Source of the DNA: Epithemia pelagica
Taxonomy: Eukaryota > Protista > Bacillariophyta
Assembly (NCBI GenBank): GCA_946965045.2
Contig: OX337234.1
Location: 1,922,001 to 1,986,000, forward strand
Reading direction: 5' to 3'
Length of the DNA: 64,000 nucleotides
Part shown: positions 10,410-31,806 of the stretch, in pieces
Numbering within the stretch: the stretch's first letter is position 1
How the letters are laid out: each line of letters begins with the position of its first letter
Notes under the pieces: model-generated
What the model saw: the letters and a program-made list of their open reading frames with translations, nothing else
Told to the model about the DNA's origin: nothing
Databases searched by the model: none
Translations under genes and position numbers: made by a program

Positions 10410-10958
10410 GCCTTTGTGCTCACTGATGCTCCACATCTCCCATATTCGGTTGTGTATATTTGGGTCCCTGGAGAACGCATTTTTTACAGTCCGTGTCTGA
10501 TTTTGCCAGTTTTGCATTGATGTTGCTCGCGTGATCATGTGGTTTCTCTGGTGTGTCGTCGATGAGAACATGTTGCACCGGTACAGTTCGTTTTGAGTGG
10601 AGGAGGGCGGCGGCTATACCATAGATGACTTCGTTTGATCTACAGCATTTCCTTACATATGTTCCTCAACAATTGTTACTCCTGGACAGCCAGTGTTGTA
10701 CACATTTGTTAGCATACCCACAGTTTCTTTTATTGGAAACACCACCATGCAAGCTAGCGGTTGAATCGAGAGGACAAAAGTTCGGAATTCGGAAGTAAAA
10801 TTCATTGTCATCATTTGAGTCGCACATTTTGGCTAAAAACAAAACCACAAACTTCGTTCCAACGAAGCCAACTCGCCAAAATCGACCAGTCCCCGTTCCC
10901 ATAATTTCGATCGAAAGCTACCTGTTTAGCGCAAAACTGGGTGTCCAAAATCATCAAA

Positions 10959-13385
10959 ATGATCCGCCGAAGTGGTCGAGGAACTGCAGCTGCATACGCT
11001 AAGGCAAATCTAAAATATGACACCATGGAATCCACAGAGAGTTCTAGCGTCAAACGAAGCCCCGATAGTCGACAGTCAACGAAGCCGTCGTCCAAGAAGC
11101 TCAAGACCGCCAACCTTTCTTCAGAATCCATCATTCCAGAATCTCTGTCTGGCGTGGTTGACCCAGAGGCTGGAATCGATGGTACCGTTACCCTGTTGGA
11201 TAACATGCCATGTGATGTGATGCTTGTGCAACTTGATCCAGCCAAAACCATGGATAGGTTCTACGTGCTACAGCTGATCGAAACTCCAACGAACAGCTTC
11301 ACCGTCCACTCACGCTGGGGACGAACAGGAACAAAAGGACAATCTCTGAAACAAGATTTTGCCGCGTCGCACCTGGCCGAAGAATGTTTTATGAAAAAGT
11401 TCACTCAAAAGACTGGTCTTACATGGGAACATCGGGCCGGATCCCCAAAAGTCGGCAAATATCGCTTCATTGCTCAAGATTATGAGAACAAAAAAGTCGG
11501 ATTTTCCGGTGCATTATGGCGATATTGGCTTGATCATGGTGTCGATGGAAAGAAAGAGGGCTGGTATGACTTTGATCCCGTGGATATGATCCAAACTGAG
11601 CGACTGTTCTCTGAGCACACCAAAAACTCGGGGTTGGTCCGTCGTTGGAGAAAATTCGGTTCTCACAACTATGAGTTGGATTTGGCAAGTATGACTCAAA
11701 CGGATGTCAAAGACAAGACGCGCTCGGTACGCCGCATCCAACGATGTCCCAGAGACTCAAACAAAGAAGAAAACAGCGAAATAACGTCAGGGACCAAGGC
11801 AAAGACTGACGCTAAGATCAAGCCACCACCCACCACACCTGCTCGATCTTCCACCGTTCCAAACGTTGTGACACCCAATGTTGGACCAGATGTTTCTGTG
11901 TCTCGTCCCCCGGTAGATCCTGAAGTCTTTCTCCACAATATAAATGCGGCTGATTATGAAGTGGTTGCCTTTACAAGCAATCCGAACCGGTACTACAGCG
12001 TGATGTTAAACCAATGCAATATAACCAAGGGAAACAACAATAACAAGTACTACCGTATACAGATGATCCGGGAGGTTGCTTCGAGTAAGTTTTATGTTTG
12101 GCAGAAATGGGGAAGGGTTGGAGAGCCTGGTAGATCATCCTCGTCGGCCCTAAAAGGTCCATATGCCAGCGAAGAACAAGCTCTACGGGAGTATTCCGGA
12201 AAGTTCAAGGCCAAGACTGGCAATGCATGGGATACAGAGAACTTTGTTAGCAAGTCAGGAAAGTATACGTTGATTGAAATAGCCGATGGTATGAACACAG
12301 AGGAACCGAGTTTGGAGTCAGTTGAGTACAAGCCATCGAAGCTTGATCCCAAAACAAAGGACCTTGTGGAGGTGCTGTTCTCAAAAGAAATGCGCAATGA
12401 GGCACTAGCCAACTTCAAGCTGGATTTGAAACGTCTGCCATTAGGAGTGCCAAGTCAACAACAGATTCAGCATGGTATTTCCATTCTTCAGAAGATTGAA
12501 AACAAGCTCGGTGGAAACTTGGTTGCAGGTTCTTTTGATGAGCTTTCTTCTGATTTCTACACTGCAATTCCCCATTCATTTGGTCGATCTCGCCCGCCGA
12601 TTATCAACACATCCAGTTCGTTACAAATGCGGTATGATATGTGTAACATCTTGTTGGACATGTATTCGACCAACGAGACGATTCGGCAGCTAGAGGACAG
12701 AACAGAGAGTAACTCCGTGATAGTCCGGGAGAACCCTGTTGATCGCCATTATGAAAGCCTCAATACTGATCTCACGTTGGTGGATGACAACTCCCTTGAA
12801 TACAAGACAATCGTGAACTACTTTCAGAATACACGTGGATTGCATTCCAGATCGCACATGTTAGATATCTGGCAAGTCAACCGTCGTACTGAGGGCGAAC
12901 GGTTCAAGCAATTCGATAAGTTGGACAATCGGCGGCTGTTGTGGCACGGGACCAACATTGCTGTCGTGGCACCGATTCTCACAAATGGCTTACGCATAAT
13001 GCCGCATGCCGGAGGAAGGGTTGGTGCCGGTATTTACTTGGCCGCTTTGCAGGAGAAAAGTCAACAGTACACAAGCGGTTACAACTCCAAATATGCTTGC
13101 ATGTTTCTGTGCGAGGCCGCGTTGGGGAAAATGCACAAAATTAATTCTGATGGACACCATGCTTCTTCGCTTAAAAAGGCCCCGGACGGATTTGATTCTG
13201 TTCACGCTGTTGGGAAATGGACGCCTCAGGAATGGGGTGAAATGCTAGTTGATGGAAACAAGGTTTCTGTACCGGTTAGCGAAGCGGAACAAAAGACCAG
13301 TGAGACAAGCTTTTCACACGACGAGTTCCTCTGTTATGAGGAAGCTCAGGTACGTCTTCGATACATCGTCACAATCCGTCTTTGA
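10959..13385 (+). CDS. PARP3: PARP3-like ADP-ribosyltransferase; architecture WGR-WWE-WGR-PARP regulatory-catalytic
   Basis: Two WGR domains (RWGRTG, KWGRVG) and a WWE-like block (WRYW...WYDFD...NYELDLASMTQ). Regulatory domain starts SKLDPKTKDLVEVLF. Catalytic H-Y-E: LLWHGTNIAVVAPILTNGLRIMPHAGGRVGAGIY and FSHDEFLCYEEAQVRLRY, closely resembling vertebrate PARP3 motifs. First in-frame ATG 10959 (alternative 11025). Confidence 0.9.
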   Translation: MIRRSGRGTAAAYAKANLKYDTMESTESSSVKRSPDSRQSTKPSSKKLKTANLSSESIIPESLSGVVDPEAGIDGTVTLLDNMPCDVMLVQLDPAKTMDRFYVLQLIETPTNSFTVHSRWGRTGTKGQSLKQDFAASHLAEECFMKKFTQKTGLTWEHRAGSPKVGKYRFIAQDYENKKVGFSGALWRYWLDHGVDGKKEGWYDFDPVDMIQTERLFSEHTKNSGLVRRWRKFGSHNYELDLASMTQTDVKDKTRSVRRIQRCPRDSNKEENSEITSGTKAKTDAKIKPPPTTPARSSTVPNVVTPNVGPDVSVSRPPVDPEVFLHNINAADYEVVAFTSNPNRYYSVMLNQCNITKGNNNNKYYRIQMIREVASSKFYVWQKWGRVGEPGRSSSSALKGPYASEEQALREYSGKFKAKTGNAWDTENFVSKSGKYTLIEIADGMNTEEPSLESVEYKPSKLDPKTKDLVEVLFSKEMRNEALANFKLDLKRLPLGVPSQQQIQHGISILQKIENKLGGNLVAGSFDELSSDFYTAIPHSFGRSRPPIINTSSSLQMRYDMCNILLDMYSTNETIRQLEDRTESNSVIVRENPVDRHYESLNTDLTLVDDNSLEYKTIVNYFQNTRGLHSRSHMLDIWQVNRRTEGERFKQFDKLDNRRLLWHGTNIAVVAPILTNGLRIMPHAGGRVGAGIYLAALQEKSQQYTSGYNSKYACMFLCEAALGKMHKINSDGHHASSLKKAPDGFDSVHAVGKWTPQEWGEMLVDGNKVSVPVSEAEQKTSETSFSHDEFLCYEEAQVRLRYIVTIRL

Positions 13386-13654
13386 TGCAAATGGAAAATT
13401 GCGTACTCTGCTTTGTCATCAACTGGTTGTCGGCCTTCATTGTTGTTGTTGTTGGGAGGTTCCGGATGCATTTTAGTTATCTGATTTTTATATTCGGCAG
13501 TATTCTTATTATAATCCATGTGACGAAGATTTATTTTATGGTTGGTTACTTCTAGAGGTTCAAGTGAACCAGAAAAGCTGTAGAGTCCAATATCATTAAA
13601 TGTGCATAGGCCACGATCTACAAATGGATGTAATGAAACAGTAGTTTTCTTCAT

Positions 13655-15397
13655 TCAATGAACAGGAAGGGAAATTGCATGCTTCTCATTTACGGCATCT
13701 TCCTGAAGAGTGCTCAAGTCCAAGGACGATGTGGTACTTGCTGTCATTGAGGTACTTCTGTCATGCATAGATTTTGTGCCTTTCTTGACAATTTGGATTC
13801 CACCTTCCATGATAGGCTTCTCGTTCTCATCCTCGTACCATTCTTCTTCTTCATAGTCATCACCGTCATCCGAGTCAACCACATTGTCGAGTTCTTGGTT
13901 CTCGTCTTTGGTTGATACTTCCATGAGTAGCTGTGCAGCTTCCTCTTCCGTCATCTCACTCCGTTCATTCATGAAGGAAAGGAAGGCTTTACACTCCTTG
14001 TCAAGGTTTGATGTGGAGGGGAAGTCATGCATCGATTCTGCAATACGGCGTAGAGTTCCAGCTTTCTCGCAGCTTCCTGATCGTATTGATCGAATAGCAT
14101 TGGTCATGCCTCGCGCTTCAATCAAGAGTGACGCGGCTGCCAAGGCACCTCCAGCAAACTGGGCCAATTGCGCCGTGCGCATAATCCCGGCGCTTAGTCT
14201 TGACATGTACCGAGAGTTTCGAGTCACGATACTTATACCACTTTTGGAACGGGAATTCATTTTCCCACGTTTTCGTCGGCGACTGTGCTTCATTTCTGCA
14301 GCCACGGCGGCTGCCAACATGGCCCGATCGACACGAATGGAAGCGCTGGCTTCATGCTCCATAGCACTGGTCAATACTTTCTCACGATTCTCCATATTCA
14401 TTTTCTTCAACTCTTGCACCGCCATTGAGTCCTCGTCCACAAAGCGTGACAAGTCTTGATCGAGCAGGGCCGCATCGCGAAGTGTTCCTGTCACGGTAAG
14501 AATCGTAAGAAGCATACCATGCAAAGCGAGGATCCGATCCGCGACTTTTCCTGGCTCAAAGAAGAACTGCTTTTTGATTTCCGTCCCGGTTTGGACTGCA
14601 GTGGCTCCGCCACCAAACAAAAGGGAAGCAACTAGCAAAGGTGGTCCAGCAGGAGTGAAAATGGTAAATGCGGCCGCAACACCCAAAACTCCAGAAACAA
14701 TTCCTGCCGATGATCCACCAACATTGATCTTGCTCTGTCTCATTTTGGTTTGCTCCAGCGCAACCGCAACCTCTTCGATGTATTGACTGGAATAACGCAG
14801 AAGTAGCACCGTCCGATCGTATAAATCCGTTAAGTGATCCATTCGTTCTCTTCGTTCCTTTGCCTCGAGAGTCATGCAACTTAGTATGAAATCTGTGTGG
14901 AAGATTTTTTCACATTCTTTGCAAAGTGTAATGCCTTCTTTCCGGAAAATGTCGGACGAGTGACTAGCACAAGAGGGAGAACCACAAGTAAGGCAACGAT
15001 CTGCTTTACTTCGCTGGAGCCAAGCTTTCCGATATGGTGAACCTGATTCGTTCGCCTTTCGTGCGCGTTTCAAGATACAGGCATTGCACTCTGCGTGATC
15101 GATATCGAAAGCACCCAATTCTTGACAAACAAGACCGAGGTTCAACTGCCTCATGTGTTCCAAAGCCTCGTATGCCTCATTGATCTCCATCGCCCTCAAT
15201 TCGTTCATGTTTTCGCTTGATTGAATATCCTCTTGCGGTTCCTCATCACTCGGGTTGATGAATTCGCCTTTTACGTATAGCTCTGCATATGGTAGTTTCA
15301 ATCTATATACATTGTCCTTTTCACGGTACGACAGAAATGTTGCAACCCCGTAAGGGGTAAGGAGGATACCTCCTCTTCTCAGGCGATTCTGCGGCAT
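13655..15397 (-). CDS. Zn-finger + apolipoprotein-L-like protein, paralog A (580 aa, intronless)
   Basis: N-terminal TPYG..LPY module. Cys/His cluster ECNAC..RCLTCGSPSCASHSS..LCKEC. Hydrophobic hairpin NVGGSSAGIVSGVLGVAAAFTIFTPAGPPLLVASLLFGGGATAVQTGTE. Collinear with 30118-31806. Confidence 0.7.
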   Translation of the reverse strand: MPQNRLRRGGILLTPYGVATFLSYREKDNVYRLKLPYAELYVKGEFINPSDEEPQEDIQSSENMNELRAMEINEAYEALEHMRQLNLGLVCQELGAFDIDHAECNACILKRARKANESGSPYRKAWLQRSKADRCLTCGSPSCASHSSDIFRKEGITLCKECEKIFHTDFILSCMTLEAKERRERMDHLTDLYDRTVLLLRYSSQYIEEVAVALEQTKMRQSKINVGGSSAGIVSGVLGVAAAFTIFTPAGPPLLVASLLFGGGATAVQTGTEIKKQFFFEPGKVADRILALHGMLLTILTVTGTLRDAALLDQDLSRFVDEDSMAVQELKKMNMENREKVLTSAMEHEASASIRVDRAMLAAAVAAEMKHSRRRKRGKMNSRSKSGISIVTRNSRYMSRLSAGIMRTAQLAQFAGGALAAASLLIEARGMTNAIRSIRSGSCEKAGTLRRIAESMHDFPSTSNLDKECKAFLSFMNERSEMTEEEAAQLLMEVSTKDENQELDNVVDSDDGDDYEEEEWYEDENEKPIMEGGIQIVKKGTKSMHDRSTSMTASTTSSLDLSTLQEDAVNEKHAISLPVH

Positions 15398-22456: not shown

Positions 22457-25400
22457 ATGATTGCTTCATCATCTCTAAAACGGTTGTCCGTCGCAGTGGT
22501 GGTGCTGTTCATCCATCAACCGATCGACATTTGGACTTTGGCGAGATTTACTGAAATCGGTGACAGCGATAATGATCATGCCAACAGAAATGTTGACCAT
22601 GCAAAGCGTCAGATTGACTGGGTGCGATCCAAAGGGGGGTTTGTAACCTCAAAGGTTGCAATTAGGCGTGTTGATCCCAACGATGATACATCTCAACTTG
22701 GTGTATTTGCCACGGAAGATATTCAAGAAGATGAGATGATTCTATCGATCCCACGTGAATGCTTGATTACAAGTGAACAAGAGAAACCTGATTGGGTCTG
22801 TCGAACGTCACGCAATCTCGCTCGAGAAATGAAACTTGGCAGTAAATCCAAGTATGCGCCATACATAGAGTACCTCAAAACGCTCCCCTATGGTCAGTTG
22901 CCGAGTATGTGGAGCGCAGGGGGGAAAGATTTGCTTCTCCAGGTGACCGGAGGAACAGACGAGGCGGATGATCAAATCATACCACCTTTTGGTCCAGCAG
23001 CATGGCTTGACAACGAATGGCGCAGAGAATGCAACGGTTCAAATGATCGGAAGAAACAACACGCGTTTCTACTAGTGATTCAGCGTGGTTGGGATGACCT
23101 TCTTATTCCACTTTATGAGCTATTCAATCATCGGAACGGAAAATGGCTTAATACAAAAAGCAACCGTGTTCATGATTCCAGTCAAGACGTTCAAGTCTAT
23201 GCGTCAAAATTGATCAAGGCTGGGGACGAAATTTATGGCAGCTACACACATTGTGAAGATTGTAGAGGAAGGGTGGATAACTATGGTACTCCCGAATTAC
23301 TACGGGATTATGGTTTTGTGGAGCAGTACCCTCAAAAGTTCATTTTCAGAGAGCAGGGAGTTGCATTTACCGTTGATCTGCCGCCCGATGATGATGACGA
23401 ACTGCAGTTGATCTGGCATTCCGAGGAAGTAGGCCCAAATGACAGCGATAAACTCGAGTTCTTTGCAGAGCAACTTAAGCGCCTGCGCCAGGTGTACTCC
23501 ATGTATATGAGATTTCGTAATGAAGGCATTCCATCCTCCGAAATGCATACACTCCGCTTATTCACTCAGTCCTATATTTTGGCCATCCAACTTTTGCTTG
23601 ACGTGGCCACTGGCGTGACTTGTGCAACACCCCCGGAGGAAGATGGAAAAGCGATTGCAACAGGGCAATGTTACATTTCTTCACAGCGTTACAGCAAACT
23701 CGACAAGCCTTACGAGGACTACGATTTGCGCACCTGTGACAAGGACGTTTCATTGGATTTCTCGTCGTACTATCAACTGGATCAAATTCAATCACATTAC
23801 CAGGTCAGCTCCTACATACAAAGTCCGTATACCAGGGATACTTGCTTTGATCTGGGTACGTGTAAGCGGTGATTGTGGCTTCAGATCATTCTTTTTCTTC
23901 TCACAGCCTGGTTTGTGTCCAATGCTTGGCTCTCAGATGATATTTATCAAATATGTGGAAGTTACCGTCCTCACTACCGTACGTCGTCGGTTATGCTTGA
24001 TTTCAAATCCATCACCCTATGTTCTCACGATATATTGTGCTGAACGATTTGAATTTTTCTAGATGAGATGGTGGTTCATTACACAGCCCGCTTCCTTTCC
24101 AAAGTTGAGCGTGTCCTGTTTGTAGGTGGTGGGGATAGGTGAGTCTCAGGTTTACCAAACTCTCCCCTTTCAATCCGGAAGCTAACTCTTTTCCTCAGCA
24201 TGTTGCTTCATGAGGTCCTCAAATACCCCAAACTGGAATTTGTCGTCGGACTAGAGCTAGGTATGTTTCGAATCATTGTTGTTGTCTTCTCGTTGTTATC
24301 GACTTCTCAGCTCGTCTTGTATGTTTCAGATCAAACGGTGACAAGAGGGGCATTCAAACACTTTGGAACGCAGCCACATTGGGACAATGAAAAGGTGCAG
24401 TGGTGGTACGGTGATGCTGCCAAAAGCTTGCTTATGCTTCCAAAGGAATACTTCGGAACTTTCGATATGGTGTTGGTGGACCTCAGTGAAACTGTGATGA
24501 GTGCCCTTGTCACAAAGGATTTGGATATCATGTCGGCGCTTTCGTTGCTTCTGAAGCCCGAGGGTATCTTTGTCAAGGTACGTGTGGAAGCATACACATC
24601 CTATGTGCGGACTCACAAAGAAAAGGGCTTACATGTAAGTTTGTGCAGAATGAATTATACTTCGAAAAACTGAACCCAATTTTCAAGCACACAATCCAGG
24701 TACATTTTTACGATGTACCTGTTGTCTGCAGTCAGAGCTTGTGCCTTGGAAGTAACGGTTTAGATTTCATCCATCGAGAGTTGACTGACCACAAAGTTGA
24801 GACTAAGCTTGCATTGTTAGACAATGTTGATCACGACCTCGAAATTGTTCATGACTATTTGAGCAACCCCAACGCAGAAAAGCATTGTGCCACAGATGAA
24901 GAGAAAGAGGAACAAGCTGAACAAGAGACAAGTCCCGGTGTTCTCATGATCGTTGAAGCGGAAAATGCCAGTGCCGTTCTTGCTCCCTCCAGTGCCCTCG
25001 AAAGTGTTCTGGTTCCAGCGTTGAAAAAGGAGGGCCTCTCAGTTGTATCTACAGTTGTGTCAGATGATGGTTCAGGCGTGGTTCTGATATCCATATTGAG
25101 AGAGGGGTATGTGGTTGCACGAACATGGCCGGAACACAAATATTGTGCATTTGACATACACCTATGGAGTAGCTTTGACAATCACGACAAAATCAAGCAA
25201 TCGTTGGTAACAGCTGTTGGTGGAGAGTCTCAATCCACTTCCTCGTATCGAATCGTGGCTGGCGGTATGTTTGGCCTGAGCACGTGGAGAGAAGATTACA
25301 AAGCTCGCGGTCCAAAATTCACGCAAGATTGCAGCAAGCCTCCAGGACCAGATCAAAGTTCGAGTATGGACTCCGAAACTATCGATAGTATACTTGTTGA

Positions 25401-26499
25401 TATGATGGATATCAGTGGATGGAAAAATGTTGTTGCAGCCGTAACGTGCGGGCCAAAGGACCAAGAGTGCCACAGCATTGGTCTCGTTTCAAAGCACTCG
25501 TCTGTTCGCAAGACGATTCCGCTTCACACCTGTCAGGTCATGCACGGCATCGAGAACCATGAAGATAGCGCGAGTGAACAGTATGCATGCGAGTTGGAGT
25601 TGTTGGACCTCTTGATAGGGTCGACCAACGATGGTGATAAGATTTCACTTCTTGTTGTGGACATCTCAGCTTCTTTCGCCTTGGCCCAAATTATCAACAA
25701 AATTGCCGTACGCCTCGCAAACAAGATATTCACGGAGGATATACAGGTGGTTGCCCCGATAGAAGATTCAACAGAAACTTGGAGAAAACATTTTGTGGAT
25801 GAGTTCAGAGATGTCATTCCAGAGGAGCCGGCATTCATGGCTGATGTATTGTTTAACGGTACATCAAATAGTCTGCAGATTGTAAGCTTTCTCTCCGGTG
25901 ACGATCATTTCATCACTCACATGAAAGAATCCGTTCAAAGCATTGAATCGCGGACTGGCCTCGTGGCTGACATTCGTGGCTTTGGAGGAGGAGGTTTCAA
26001 GTTTCAAGAGAATTTCGAAGCATCTCAGTGGTTCTTGCCCGGGGATTACGATCAACGAGGCCCCTATGAACAGTGGCAGTCCCAGCAGCCCACAGGCCAT
26101 CAGTCAATAGTTCAGTTACAGGCGCACGGCGAAGGCAATGAAACAGAGTTGTCCACGGGCACAGTGAAAGATTTGTTGATTAACTCACTTTCAGCCTTGG
26201 AAATAGAAACCAGCATTCCTCCTCAAGAATTGGACATCGGAGATGGCAGTGTGATTGTTGCATTTTTGTCAGATGGAACGGGGCATATAGTGACCTTATA
26301 CGATGGCAGAGATCACATGTCGTTGAACATTTTTCTCTACGAGGAGTCATTCTCTTTTGCTGACGACTTGGGATTTGAATTCAAGCAAAGGAAGCCGTCA
26401 CTTGCTGCTGCTTTGTTTGACGAAATGCCCAGAGGCTACGGCCGAGTGGTGAACTTTCTCGATGGCCAGGAACGTCGTGGAGAGCCTCACTGGGTTTAG
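22457..26499 (+). CDS. Multidomain SET methyltransferase + aminopropyltransferase (spermidine-synthase-like) + two degenerate AdoMetDC-like domains, 1225 aa (exons 22457-23855, 23937-23978, 24063-24138, 24199-24260, 24330-24577, 24649-26499)
   Basis: Five canonical GT-AG introns give one open frame of 3678 nt. Hydrophobic N-terminal leader. SET motifs LIPLYELFNH, GDEIYGSY, LLRDYGFVE. APT motifs YHEMVVH, VLFVGGGDS, GLELDQ, YGDAAK, FDMVLVDLSE, LKPEGIFV. AdoMetDC-like ILREGYVVARTWPEHKYCAFDI, plus a second, weaker copy near the C-terminus. Confidence 0.85.
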
Positions 26500-29379: not shown

Positions 29380-30117
29380 AAATTAAGCGAAGTATGGCTT
29401 CACAGGAAGTCGGCTTGCACATGAAATGACAATCTCTTTGAGCAACTCATCGAAATGAATCTGAGAGATCCAGCAATCCCGCATAGTATCAGTTCTTGAG
29501 CTCACAAGAAGCACCCTAATAGACCTTATTGGAGCCATGAATCGATTGATAGTGTGAGATAGCAACTGACATCTTTGCGTCTTCATGCATGTCTGTGGAT
29601 TCCACATTCAACGGCAGCTGACGAAATGCCCATCAGAAACGTTCCGCTACGCCTAATGCTTTGGACGCCGAGCCTCTTCATCTCAGCGTACACGGGGTGG
29701 TGGCTGACCTTGATTTGTTTTGTACACGTGATGGTTTCTCCCTATCTCGATTGCGGTAATGCTATCAGCTACTCCTATCCCCCAACAAAACTCTACTTCC
29801 ACTCCCAAGCGCTCGGAACAGATACAGTGAGATAGGTTATGCGCAGTACTTCCGAATTGCTCGTGGTAGGCATGAGCTCCGGGTTGTCATTGAAGCAAAA
29901 CACGACCAAACATATCCACAATCCACACGTTTTGTCGTTACAAGTACTTCCGGATTTGGTACTCATTATTTCACACTCCATCGGTTCAGAAAGAGTCGCG
30001 CAATCCCAACTTGGGATTTGGGATACACTACACACCACACGCCTACCTTGCGTTTTTTGCATCGTGCATCGTGTCGCTGTCACAAAAAAGAAAAGACTCT
30101 CCAAAGACAAAGGGACT

Positions 30118-31806
30118 ATGAGAATTGGTGATTTTGTCTCCACTCCCTACGGGGAAGCCAAGTTGACTTTATATCGTGAGACAGATAAAACGTATGTACT
30201 TCGCCTGCCTTTCGGCATTCTCTATGCAAACAAGGAGACGATTTCTGCAGTACAAGAAGAGAAAGAGGCGAAGGATGCCCTCGTCCGCGCCAAAAAAGCA
30301 ACGGAACTGGGCGAGGCTTATGCGTCTCTCGAGACCATGAGGAAATTCAATCTTGAAGTCGCTTGTCAGGAATGTGGAATTCAACATGTCGACTACGAAG
30401 AATGTACTGCATGTTTGTTGGAAGGAGCGGTCGCTGCGCGGGCAGCGAGTATGTCGGGTCGCTTCTCGAGCATGTTCAAGCCATCGGATAGTATGCCGCG
30501 GCTCAAGCGCTTTGTGGAAGAGCGTGAAAAGAAGAGTAAACCGGATCGATGCTTGACCTGTGGAGCCCCATGTTGTGCCAAGCATTCGTCGGCAACTTTT
30601 CGTCGAGAAGGAATCACCGTGTGCAGCGAGTGTGAAGGTGTGTTCCAGATGGATTTCATTGTGGACTGCATGACATTGAATAAGAAAGAGCGCCAGGCCA
30701 AGGTGGACAAATTAATTGACCTGTACGATCGAGCGGTATTACTTCTGAAATTTTCAGCTCAATATATTGACGAAGTGGCTGACAGCCTTGAAGATACCAA
30801 GAAACGACACAACCATCTCAACGTCGGAGGTTCTTCGGCTGGCATTGTTTCTGGTGTACTGGGCGTTGCAGCTGCTGTGACAATACTGACACCAGCAGGA
30901 GCTCCTTTATTGCTTGCCTCGTTAATGCTTGGGACTGGAGCTACTGCTGTTCAGACGGGAACCGAAGTCAACAGCAGATACTTTAGTGAACCCAATAAGG
31001 TCGCGGATAGAATCATGGCCACTCATGGAATGCTTCTTTCCGTCCTTACTGTAACAGGAACGTTGCGTGATGCCGCTACAAGAGATCATATCCGAACAGA
31101 TGCCTTTGAAGACGACTCTCCAATATTGAGGGAACTTCAAAAGAACCACATCAAAAATCGCCAGGCTTTGCTGGCTGGAATGACAGCTGGACGCTTCTCC
31201 CTCGCAAGCGCGGAACTTCTGGGCCTGGCTGAGGGTGCCACCATTGCGAGAGGTGCCCGTTTATTTTCTCGATCTGGTACGGCAGCCATGCGAACACTTC
31301 GTTTTGCGCGCTTTGCAGGAGGTGCCTTGGCAGCAGCTACATTGTTGGTGGAAGCCAAAGGCATGCATAACACCGTTGAAGCAATCCGAGCTGGTTCTCC
31401 CTGTGAAAAGGCCGAGGCACTACGACACATTCAACTGGAAATGCCCGATCTCCCGACTACAGCCGATCTTGAGAAGGAATGCACTGCATACTTAAACTAC
31501 ATGGACAACAGAGGTCGTCAAATGAAGGAGGAGGAAGCAATTCAGCTATTGTTGGAAGTTTCGGAGGCTGCACAGAAAGAGCAAGAGCAGAGGGAAAAAG
31601 AAGAGAAGGAAAGAGAGGCAGCCGCCGCCAGAGAAGAAGAGCAAAGGAGAAGCGAGGAAGGTCAAGAACGGGAAGGGGAACTGATTGTGGAAGGAGAGTC
31701 CTCTGTGACAGATGCGACAGAGAGCGTAGCTTCGAAAGAAAGCAGTCGCAGCATGGGGGCTTCTCTACTGGAACGCATTCAACGACACAAACAAACGCAA
31801 CAATAG
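30118..31806 (+). CDS. Zn-finger + apolipoprotein-L-like protein, paralog B (562 aa, intronless)
   Basis: MRIGDFVSTPYG..LPFGILY; ECTAC..RCLTCGAPCCAKHSS..VCSEC; NVGGSSAGIVSGVLGVAAAVTILTPAGAPLLLASLMLGTGATAVQTGTE; FARFAGGALAAATLLVEAKGM..GSPCEKAEALR; acidic coiled-coil tail. Confidence 0.7.
   Translation: MRIGDFVSTPYGEAKLTLYRETDKTYVLRLPFGILYANKETISAVQEEKEAKDALVRAKKATELGEAYASLETMRKFNLEVACQECGIQHVDYEECTACLLEGAVAARAASMSGRFSSMFKPSDSMPRLKRFVEEREKKSKPDRCLTCGAPCCAKHSSATFRREGITVCSECEGVFQMDFIVDCMTLNKKERQAKVDKLIDLYDRAVLLLKFSAQYIDEVADSLEDTKKRHNHLNVGGSSAGIVSGVLGVAAAVTILTPAGAPLLLASLMLGTGATAVQTGTEVNSRYFSEPNKVADRIMATHGMLLSVLTVTGTLRDAATRDHIRTDAFEDDSPILRELQKNHIKNRQALLAGMTAGRFSLASAELLGLAEGATIARGARLFSRSGTAAMRTLRFARFAGGALAAATLLVEAKGMHNTVEAIRAGSPCEKAEALRHIQLEMPDLPTTADLEKECTAYLNYMDNRGRQMKEEEAIQLLLEVSEAAQKEQEQREKEEKEREAAAAREEEQRRSEEGQEREGELIVEGESSVTDATESVASKESSRSMGASLLERIQRHKQTQQ

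Follow-up and report, generated by a model that had tools for sequence, protein, structure and literature searches.

Which family do two paralogous genes of the diatom Epithemia pelagica belong to, and what might their products do in the cell? The genes, A and B, lie head to head about 15 kb apart, both inside a window of 64,000 nucleotides (contig OX337234.1, positions 1,922,001 to 1,986,000; coordinates below are within this window), and a preliminary description had likened their products to apolipoprotein L (ApoL) proteins carrying a zinc finger. ApoL proteins have been studied almost wholly in mammals, in the contexts of trypanolysis, kidney disease, bacterial killing and phagosome rupture. 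Here, we report evidence that A and B are likely lineage-specific paralogs and that their C-terminal half, though divergent, truly belongs to the ApoL family; they may work by hairpin insertion.

Probable homology to ApoL

Protein B matched the Pfam ApoL model (PF05461) at 29.6 bits (E value, 6e-7; gathering cut-off, 25.9 bits). A six-frame scan of the 60.5-Mb genome with the same model gave B as its sole match (31.7 bits), and 14 control genomes gave zero matches. The relative P0005 scored 32.0 bits over model positions 71 to 289, and beyond B and P0005, nine further relatives, three of which are C-terminal fragments, matched in the same register. P0011, P0029, P0060, P0013 and P0025 were collinear on the model (E values, 1e-5 to 0.5), with spans of 92 to 293 for P0011, 92 to 291 for P0029 and 89 to 290 for P0013. 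Fragments P0260, P0259 and P0232 matched positions 208/235 to 290 (E values, 0.004 to 0.025), wholly C-terminal to the hydrophobic hairpin, and the similarity to ApoL is therefore more than a Gly/Ala hairpin. The preliminary description had considered that a generic hairpin of this kind might be all that is shared; the fragments match at the C-terminal helix alone. Among 36 aligned members of the family, 6 matched PF05461 at an E value of ≤0.01, while any other family was matched by one member at most.

In feature searches of ESM-Atlas with the C-terminal domains of A and B, clusters of nematode, chordate and mollusc ApoLs took first rank for both proteins, with a score of 0.95, 212 to 217 of 256 features in common (212 to 216 for A) and 42 of the 100 nearest clusters being ApoL; shuffled proteins reach this score about once in 100. 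A was assigned to ApoL because it is 49% identical to B (510 residues; E value, 1e-150), with 56% identity inside the ApoL-like domain.

Several results weigh against the assignment or add nothing to it. A alone had no ApoL match in Pfam, the PF05461 scores lie only 4 to 6 bits over the threshold, and most members, A included, lie below it. Animal ApoL proteins were not among the best 150 of 373 clusters found with the family profile, nor among 86 word-search matches. The ESM-Atlas and Pfam signals may also share one compositional cue. Structure comparison gave no confirmation: the AlphaFold 2 (AF2) model had a predicted local distance difference test score (pLDDT) of 72 overall and <50 in the hairpin and central loop, and the ApoL-like domain folded separately had a pLDDT of 60.6, with a template modeling (TM) score of ≤0.30 in the Atlas shape search. 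A sequence search of the PDB with the whole-family profile gave two matches only, both with an E value of >1 and neither of them ApoL, and a Foldseek search of the PDB with the full model gave nothing at an E value of ≤0.001. None of the PDB searches brought up an ApoL chain; Foldseek, VIA-align and the Atlas shape search returned generic helical bundles, with the hairpin poorly modeled. To our knowledge, the solved ApoL structures are of N-terminal domains only. A likeness to alpha-pore-forming toxins (SmhB, AhlB and PaxB) had a Foldseek probability of ≤0.09 and was not used.

The marginal Pfam scores, the members that lack a match, the lack of animal sequences among the matches listed and the structure searches would all suit a diatom-specific hairpin membrane protein that resembles ApoL by convergence or composition. 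Such a protein should not give collinear matches over about 220 model positions in several members, nor should fragments that match only beyond the hairpin still hit the correct end of the model. It is also opposed by the specificity of PF05461, which matched nothing else in the six-frame translation or the controls and was the only family matched by more than one member, and by the first rank of ApoL for both paralogs in the feature search at a level seldom attained by shuffled proteins. We regard convergence as improbable and homology between the C-terminal half of A and B and ApoL as likely, on sequence evidence that bears out the ApoL likeness first described: above-cut-off scores for B and P0005, a collinear register and first rank in ESM-Atlas.

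Gene models and domain architecture

Both reading frames are intact (Table 1) and lie where the preliminary description had placed them, and the four sequence blocks that it had reported as common to them were all found in A and B. A is collinear over its full length with orthologs P0008 and P0007, and an MPQ(N/T)R start is common to all three. The open frame of B runs from 29839 to 31806 (+ strand), with 93 codons upstream of the conserved start; orthologs P0002, P0009 and P0017 begin at an MRIGDF/MRVGDF methionine and thereby fix the true start of B at 30118. The database gene call P0001 (655 amino acids [aa]) uses the long form, including 29839 to 30117 (+ strand); because this extension is conserved in no ortholog, the start was probably mis-called. 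A six-frame search with the domain profile found exactly two copies in the assembly, A and B, and DNA contigs span the locus of A without joints. Two short marine metatranscriptome contigs lie on A, at 13708 to 13964 (0 mismatches) and 14239 to 14391 (1 mismatch), and this presence in RNA libraries is weak evidence that A is transcribed.

Table 1. Features of genes A and B (window coordinates)
Gene	Feature	Position	Strand	Basis or detail
A	Complete coding sequence without introns, 580 aa plus stop	13655..15397	-	Open reading frame; full-length alignment with orthologs
A	N-terminal small beta-barrel, residues 6-45, TPYG...LPY...LY	15263..15382	-	Aligned with B residues 1-40
A	Predicted zinc-finger region	14912..15127	-	C91, C104-x2-C107 ... 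C135-x2-C138-x4-C143-x2-H146 ... C159-x2-C162
A	ApoL-like helical domain, residues 185-483	13949..14845	-	Identity to B; ESM-Atlas features
A	Gly/Ala/Ser-rich hydrophobic helix-turn-helix hairpin, residues 224-272	14582..14728	-	Kyte-Doolittle maximum, 1.79
A	Basic KR-rich loop insertion, residues about 372-387	14237-14284	-	A-type proteins
A	FAGGALAAA...GS-CEKA..LRR helix, residues 414-451	14045..14158	-	Conserved block
A	Acidic, weakly conserved C-terminal tail, residues 484-580, net charge -21	13658..13948	-	dN 0.55 versus ortholog
B	Complete coding sequence without introns, 562 aa plus stop	30118..31806	+	Open reading frame from conserved start
B	N-terminal Tudor/SH3-like beta-barrel, residues 1-40	30118..30237	+	AF2 model
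B	Predicted zinc-finger region	30364..30633	+	C83, C96-x2-C99 ... C145-x2-C148-x4-C153-x2-H156 ... C169-x2-C172
B	Pfam ApoL PF05461 match, residues 210-437	30745..31428	+	Model positions 64-284 of 298
B	Hydrophobic helix-turn-helix hairpin, residues 234-283	30817..30966	+	Kyte-Doolittle maximum, 1.92; AF2 pLDDT <50
B	FAGGALAAA...GSPCEKAEALRH helix, residues 399-437	31312..31428	+	Conserved block
B	C-terminal motif SLLERI..(H/F)K, residues about 544-562	31747-31806	+	After non-conserved acidic tail

From the N to the C terminus, the predicted architecture comprises a Tudor/SH3-like barrel, a long helix, a two-zinc finger, the ApoL-like helical domain and an acidic tail. In the AF2 model, residues 1 to 40 of B form four strands (pLDDT, 86 to 93), and a PDB search by Foldseek with the complete model paired this barrel with Tudor domains (3qii, PHF20 Tudor 2; 2dig, LBR Tudor) at a probability of 0.99 to 1.0 over 47 to 48 columns, with an E value of about 1. 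The likeness lies in a four-strand barrel of ~45 residues (target TM score, 0.53 to 0.59; root mean square deviation, 2.3 to 2.9), whereas identity is 14 to 17% and Pfam gives the diatom barrel no match.

The finger (AF2 pLDDT, 88 to 95 over B residues 141 to 200) has eight ligands that would probably hold two zinc ions in a cross-braced arrangement, zinc binding being predicted from the ligand pattern. The first CxxC lies 27 residues (A), 45 residues (B) or further upstream of the rest, behind a linker of variable length. A spacing of three residues within the second half had been described previously; the invariant pattern is C-x2-C-x4-C-x2-H, the impression of three having come from an extra, non-conserved Cys152 in B. 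The finger had also been said to resemble a FYVE domain without the R(R/K)HHCR motif. The ligand spacing (CxxC ... CxxC-x4-CxxH ... CxxC, including a C-x-x-H-S-S stretch) and the absence of that motif hold, and the likeness goes no further than resemblance. The best scores against Pfam FYVE (PF01363) were 11.8 bits for P0011 (E value, 0.26) and 10.1 bits for P0255 (range of E values, 0.26 to 0.92), and the cut-off of 27.8 bits was not reached by the family; the sub-threshold matches of two members were in the right register (model positions 26 to 64 of 67). The family profile aligned with the Vps27 FYVE domain (PDB 1vfy) at the C-x-x-H-S-S stretch with an E value of 1.5. None of the phosphatidylinositol 3-phosphate (PI3P) motifs WxxD, R(R/K)HHCR and RVC was found in the diatom alignment, where (D/P)(R/x)CL(T/I)CG and (I/L)(T/x)(V/L)C stand instead. 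Because these motifs are absent, the first linker is variable and scores are far below the threshold, we class the finger as a putative FYVE-like treble clef and not as a FYVE domain, and PI3P binding would not be expected.

A zinc finger, a Tudor-like barrel and, in A, a basic KR-rich loop might instead indicate a nucleic-acid-binding or transcription-related protein, and one relative (P0074) bears the automatic name "transcription elongation factor Elf1." That is a single automatic label; the weak zinc-ribbon-type Pfam matches that also point this way (E values, 0.13 to 0.34) all lie far under the threshold, and the largest and best-conserved part of the protein is a hydrophobic hairpin domain, which would be out of place in a soluble nuclear factor. 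Such a role is highly improbable.

Neither A nor B has a hydrophobic stretch before residue about 224, in agreement with the earlier statement that a signal peptide is absent, and both proteins are therefore predicted to be made in the cytosol. At the C terminus, B-type proteins and most diatom relatives keep a short SLLERI..(H/F)K motif, modeled as a helix (pLDDT, about 82), which A-type proteins have only in degenerate form.

Family range and conservation

A search of 1.84 billion representative proteins with a profile of the C-terminal domain gave 373 clusters (50% identity) at an E value of ≤1e-3, of which 216 reached ≤1e-30 and 59 fell between 1e-10 and 1e-3. All named matches, from the family profile and word searches, were diatoms, pennate and centric (Epithemia, Phaeodactylum, Nitzschia, Fragilaria, Triceratium, Odontella and Grammatophora), including a Phaeodactylum tricornutum ortholog, B7G0A1; several relatives are transcripts of the Marine Microbial Eukaryote Transcriptome Sequencing Project (MMETSP). 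By these sequence matches, whose number goes well beyond chance, A and B are members of a diatom-wide protein family. A word search with the domain profile at an E value of ≤10 gave 86 matches, all family members or fragments, with no bridging sequences, and one with the N-terminal 200 residues gave five close relatives only. No relatives were found on IMG/VR viral contigs with the diatom profile. Automated annotation has already reached the family: the protein collection lists a few of its members with a precomputed PF05461 tag.

Conservation was measured as the majority-residue fraction in the alignment of 36 diatom sequences (B numbering). Six finger positions (C145, C148, C153, H156, C169 and C172) are invariant in 36/36; C96 (35/36), C99 (34/36) and C83 (33/36) are near-invariant, as is C429. 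The hairpin (residues 234 to 283) is the best-conserved segment, at 0.85 against 0.33 to 0.69 elsewhere, and the FAGGAL...PCEKA helix is conserved at 0.69. The gene models of relatives P0252, P0255 and P0257 all stop at exactly one point, ...LLFGGR, halfway through the hairpin, which suggests that those species share a conserved intron site missing from A and B of the window.

Orthologs, synteny and selection

Among named relatives, the nearest are P0002 (77% identity to B) and P0008 (68% identity to A, 76% in the ApoL-like domain), both from Epithemia clementina. In E. clementina, the A ortholog adjoins a WGR-WWE-WGR-PARP gene, the same neighbor as in the window, and the B ortholog is flanked by a SET/spermine-synthase/AdoMetDC fusion and a PP2C gene, again as in the window.

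In a maximum-likelihood tree, the A-type (A, P0008 and P0007) and B-type (B, P0002, P0003 and P0004) proteins are sisters in one clade (support, 100/99), so the duplication is lineage specific; the A stem is the longer. Against the E. clementina orthologs, nonsynonymous divergence (dN) was 0.25 for A and 0.15 for B, with synonymous divergence (dS) saturated in both, and dN/dS in the hairpin was 0.07 for A and 0.05 for B. Both genes are under strong purifying selection. A-type proteins (A, P0007 and P0008) carry a basic Arg/Lys/Ser-rich insertion in a variable loop of the ApoL-like domain, raising the net charge of this domain to +12 in A, versus −3 in B; the insertion could be a nuclear-localization-like or lipid-binding patch. 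The faster divergence of A and its gain of this loop hint at subfunctionalization.

The PARP gene beside A (10941 to 13385, + strand) encodes 814 aa (WGR-WWE-WGR-PARP_reg-PARP) and is convergent with A, a pairing kept in E. clementina (L003 12372-14873). Between the two genes, at 13508 to 13646, two DNA runs (X4 and X5) each contain two contig versions, one matching the window exactly and the other, of about half the depth, differing by 6 substitutions and 3 gaps; these look like two haplotypes. Open reading frames 22457 to 23872 and 24643 to 26499 (+ strand) correspond to one 1256-aa E. clementina gene (L004 4371-8621) with SET, spermine-synthase and AdoMetDC matches and are probably a single gene divided by an intron. 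The neighbors of A and B (PARP, epimerase, DnaJ and PP2C genes) gave no functional clue.

Proposed mechanism and possible biological role

In the mechanism that we propose, the amphipathic helices of the ApoL-like bundle would shield the hairpin and keep the protein in a soluble or peripheral state, while the barrel and zinc-finger module would direct it to a particular membrane or partner, or gate it. In the manner of intracellular animal ApoLs, the hairpin would then enter the bilayer and serve as an ion-conducting or membrane-perturbing element; by analogy with those proteins, A and B may have channel or lytic activity. That the hairpin is nearly invariant among diatoms points to pore lining or to sequence-specific packing of its helices, and less to a mere anchor.

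Among animal ApoLs are proteins that form pores, lyse bacteria or take part in cell death (ApoL1, ApoL3, ApoL6 and ApoL7C), and homology to them invites the view that A and B are effectors of defense or programmed cell death, freed from autoinhibition by infection or stress to permeabilize a pathogen membrane, an organelle or a compartment of phagosome type, with the death of the invader or of the cell as the outcome. The lineage-specific duplication, the accelerated A branch and the basic loop of A would fit an effector, as would a PF05461 gene reported in the algal virus TsV-N1 (PMC4517135). Set against this are the presence of only two copies in the genome, without expansion, their conserved synteny, orthologs across diatoms with an almost invariant hairpin, and dN far under the saturated dS, unlike typical fast-evolving immune effectors; no relatives, moreover, were found on IMG/VR viral contigs. 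We hold such a defensive role to be rather unlikely. A fuller version, in which an ancient cytosolic ApoL-type permeabilizing effector uses its finger and Tudor-like module to sense a danger or death signal and then frees the hairpin to break through the membrane of an organelle or one that encloses a pathogen, seems slightly less likely again. If true, it would be a protist counterpart of ApoL cell-autonomous immunity or cell death, and the ApoL mechanism would have arisen before or outside animals.

The two copies, synteny, deep orthology and strong constraint favor a conserved cellular role over a fast-evolving immune family. The protein may be a housekeeping factor, anchored permanently by its hairpin in an endomembrane (endoplasmic reticulum, Golgi, vacuole or plastid-surrounding membrane) and regulating membrane dynamics, lipid signaling or cation flux, with the finger and barrel as docking modules. 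This would suit the absence of a signal peptide and the MMETSP transcripts of relatives, which come from ordinary cultures; intracellular human ApoLs such as ApoL3, likewise, act on Golgi membrane dynamics. The lack of PI3P-binding motifs leaves such a factor with no clear membrane address, and the evidence fits constitutive and triggered roles alike. We therefore favor housekeeping only tentatively, at somewhat short of an even chance; a conserved membrane or ion-homeostasis role nevertheless fits the evidence better than defense or cell death does.

Comparison with known ApoL systems

Animal ApoLs (PF05461; human ApoL1 to ApoL6, mouse ApoL7C and ApoL9) resemble the diatom proteins in the above-cut-off profile match (model positions about 64 to 293) and in their layout, in which a hydrophobic helix-turn-helix hairpin precedes amphipathic helices and a C-terminal helix bearing a motif of the type G-x-x-(S/C)-E-x-A-E-x-L, of which ApoL1 presumably has a counterpart. 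The intracellular ApoL2 to ApoL6 share the lack of a signal peptide. Apart from the organisms, the differences lie in the acidic tail with its own conserved SLLERI motif and in low copy number and slow evolution, as against the expanded, fast-evolving gene clusters of animals. We know of no animal ApoL with the N-terminal barrel and two-zinc finger.

A literature search of 8.4 million papers and preprints on ApoL in diatoms, stramenopiles and protists, on PF05461 and on Phaeodactylum accessions found no account of the family, consistent with the preliminary description, which knew of none in diatoms. The one non-animal mention that it brought up, in the single paper there with the accession PF05461, was TsV-N1, a Tetraselmis virus whose gene TsV_04 is annotated as PF05461, with a mammalian best match at 2e-11 (PMC4517135). 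TsV_04 is likewise a non-animal ApoL domain in the algal world (PMC4517135), whereas the diatom profile finds no viral relative in IMG/VR. The ApoL domain family was already known; what is new here is the putative ApoL domain in diatoms, joined to a barrel and a zinc finger in a novel architecture.

A family familiar chiefly from the immunity of animals would thus extend into diatoms. A conserved, low-copy diatom ApoL family with a different regulatory front end would offer a tractable system for the function of the core hairpin domain, for instance through Phaeodactylum B7G0A1, and diatom biology gains a concrete candidate for a protein that permeabilizes membranes or forms a channel during stress, death or organelle dynamics.

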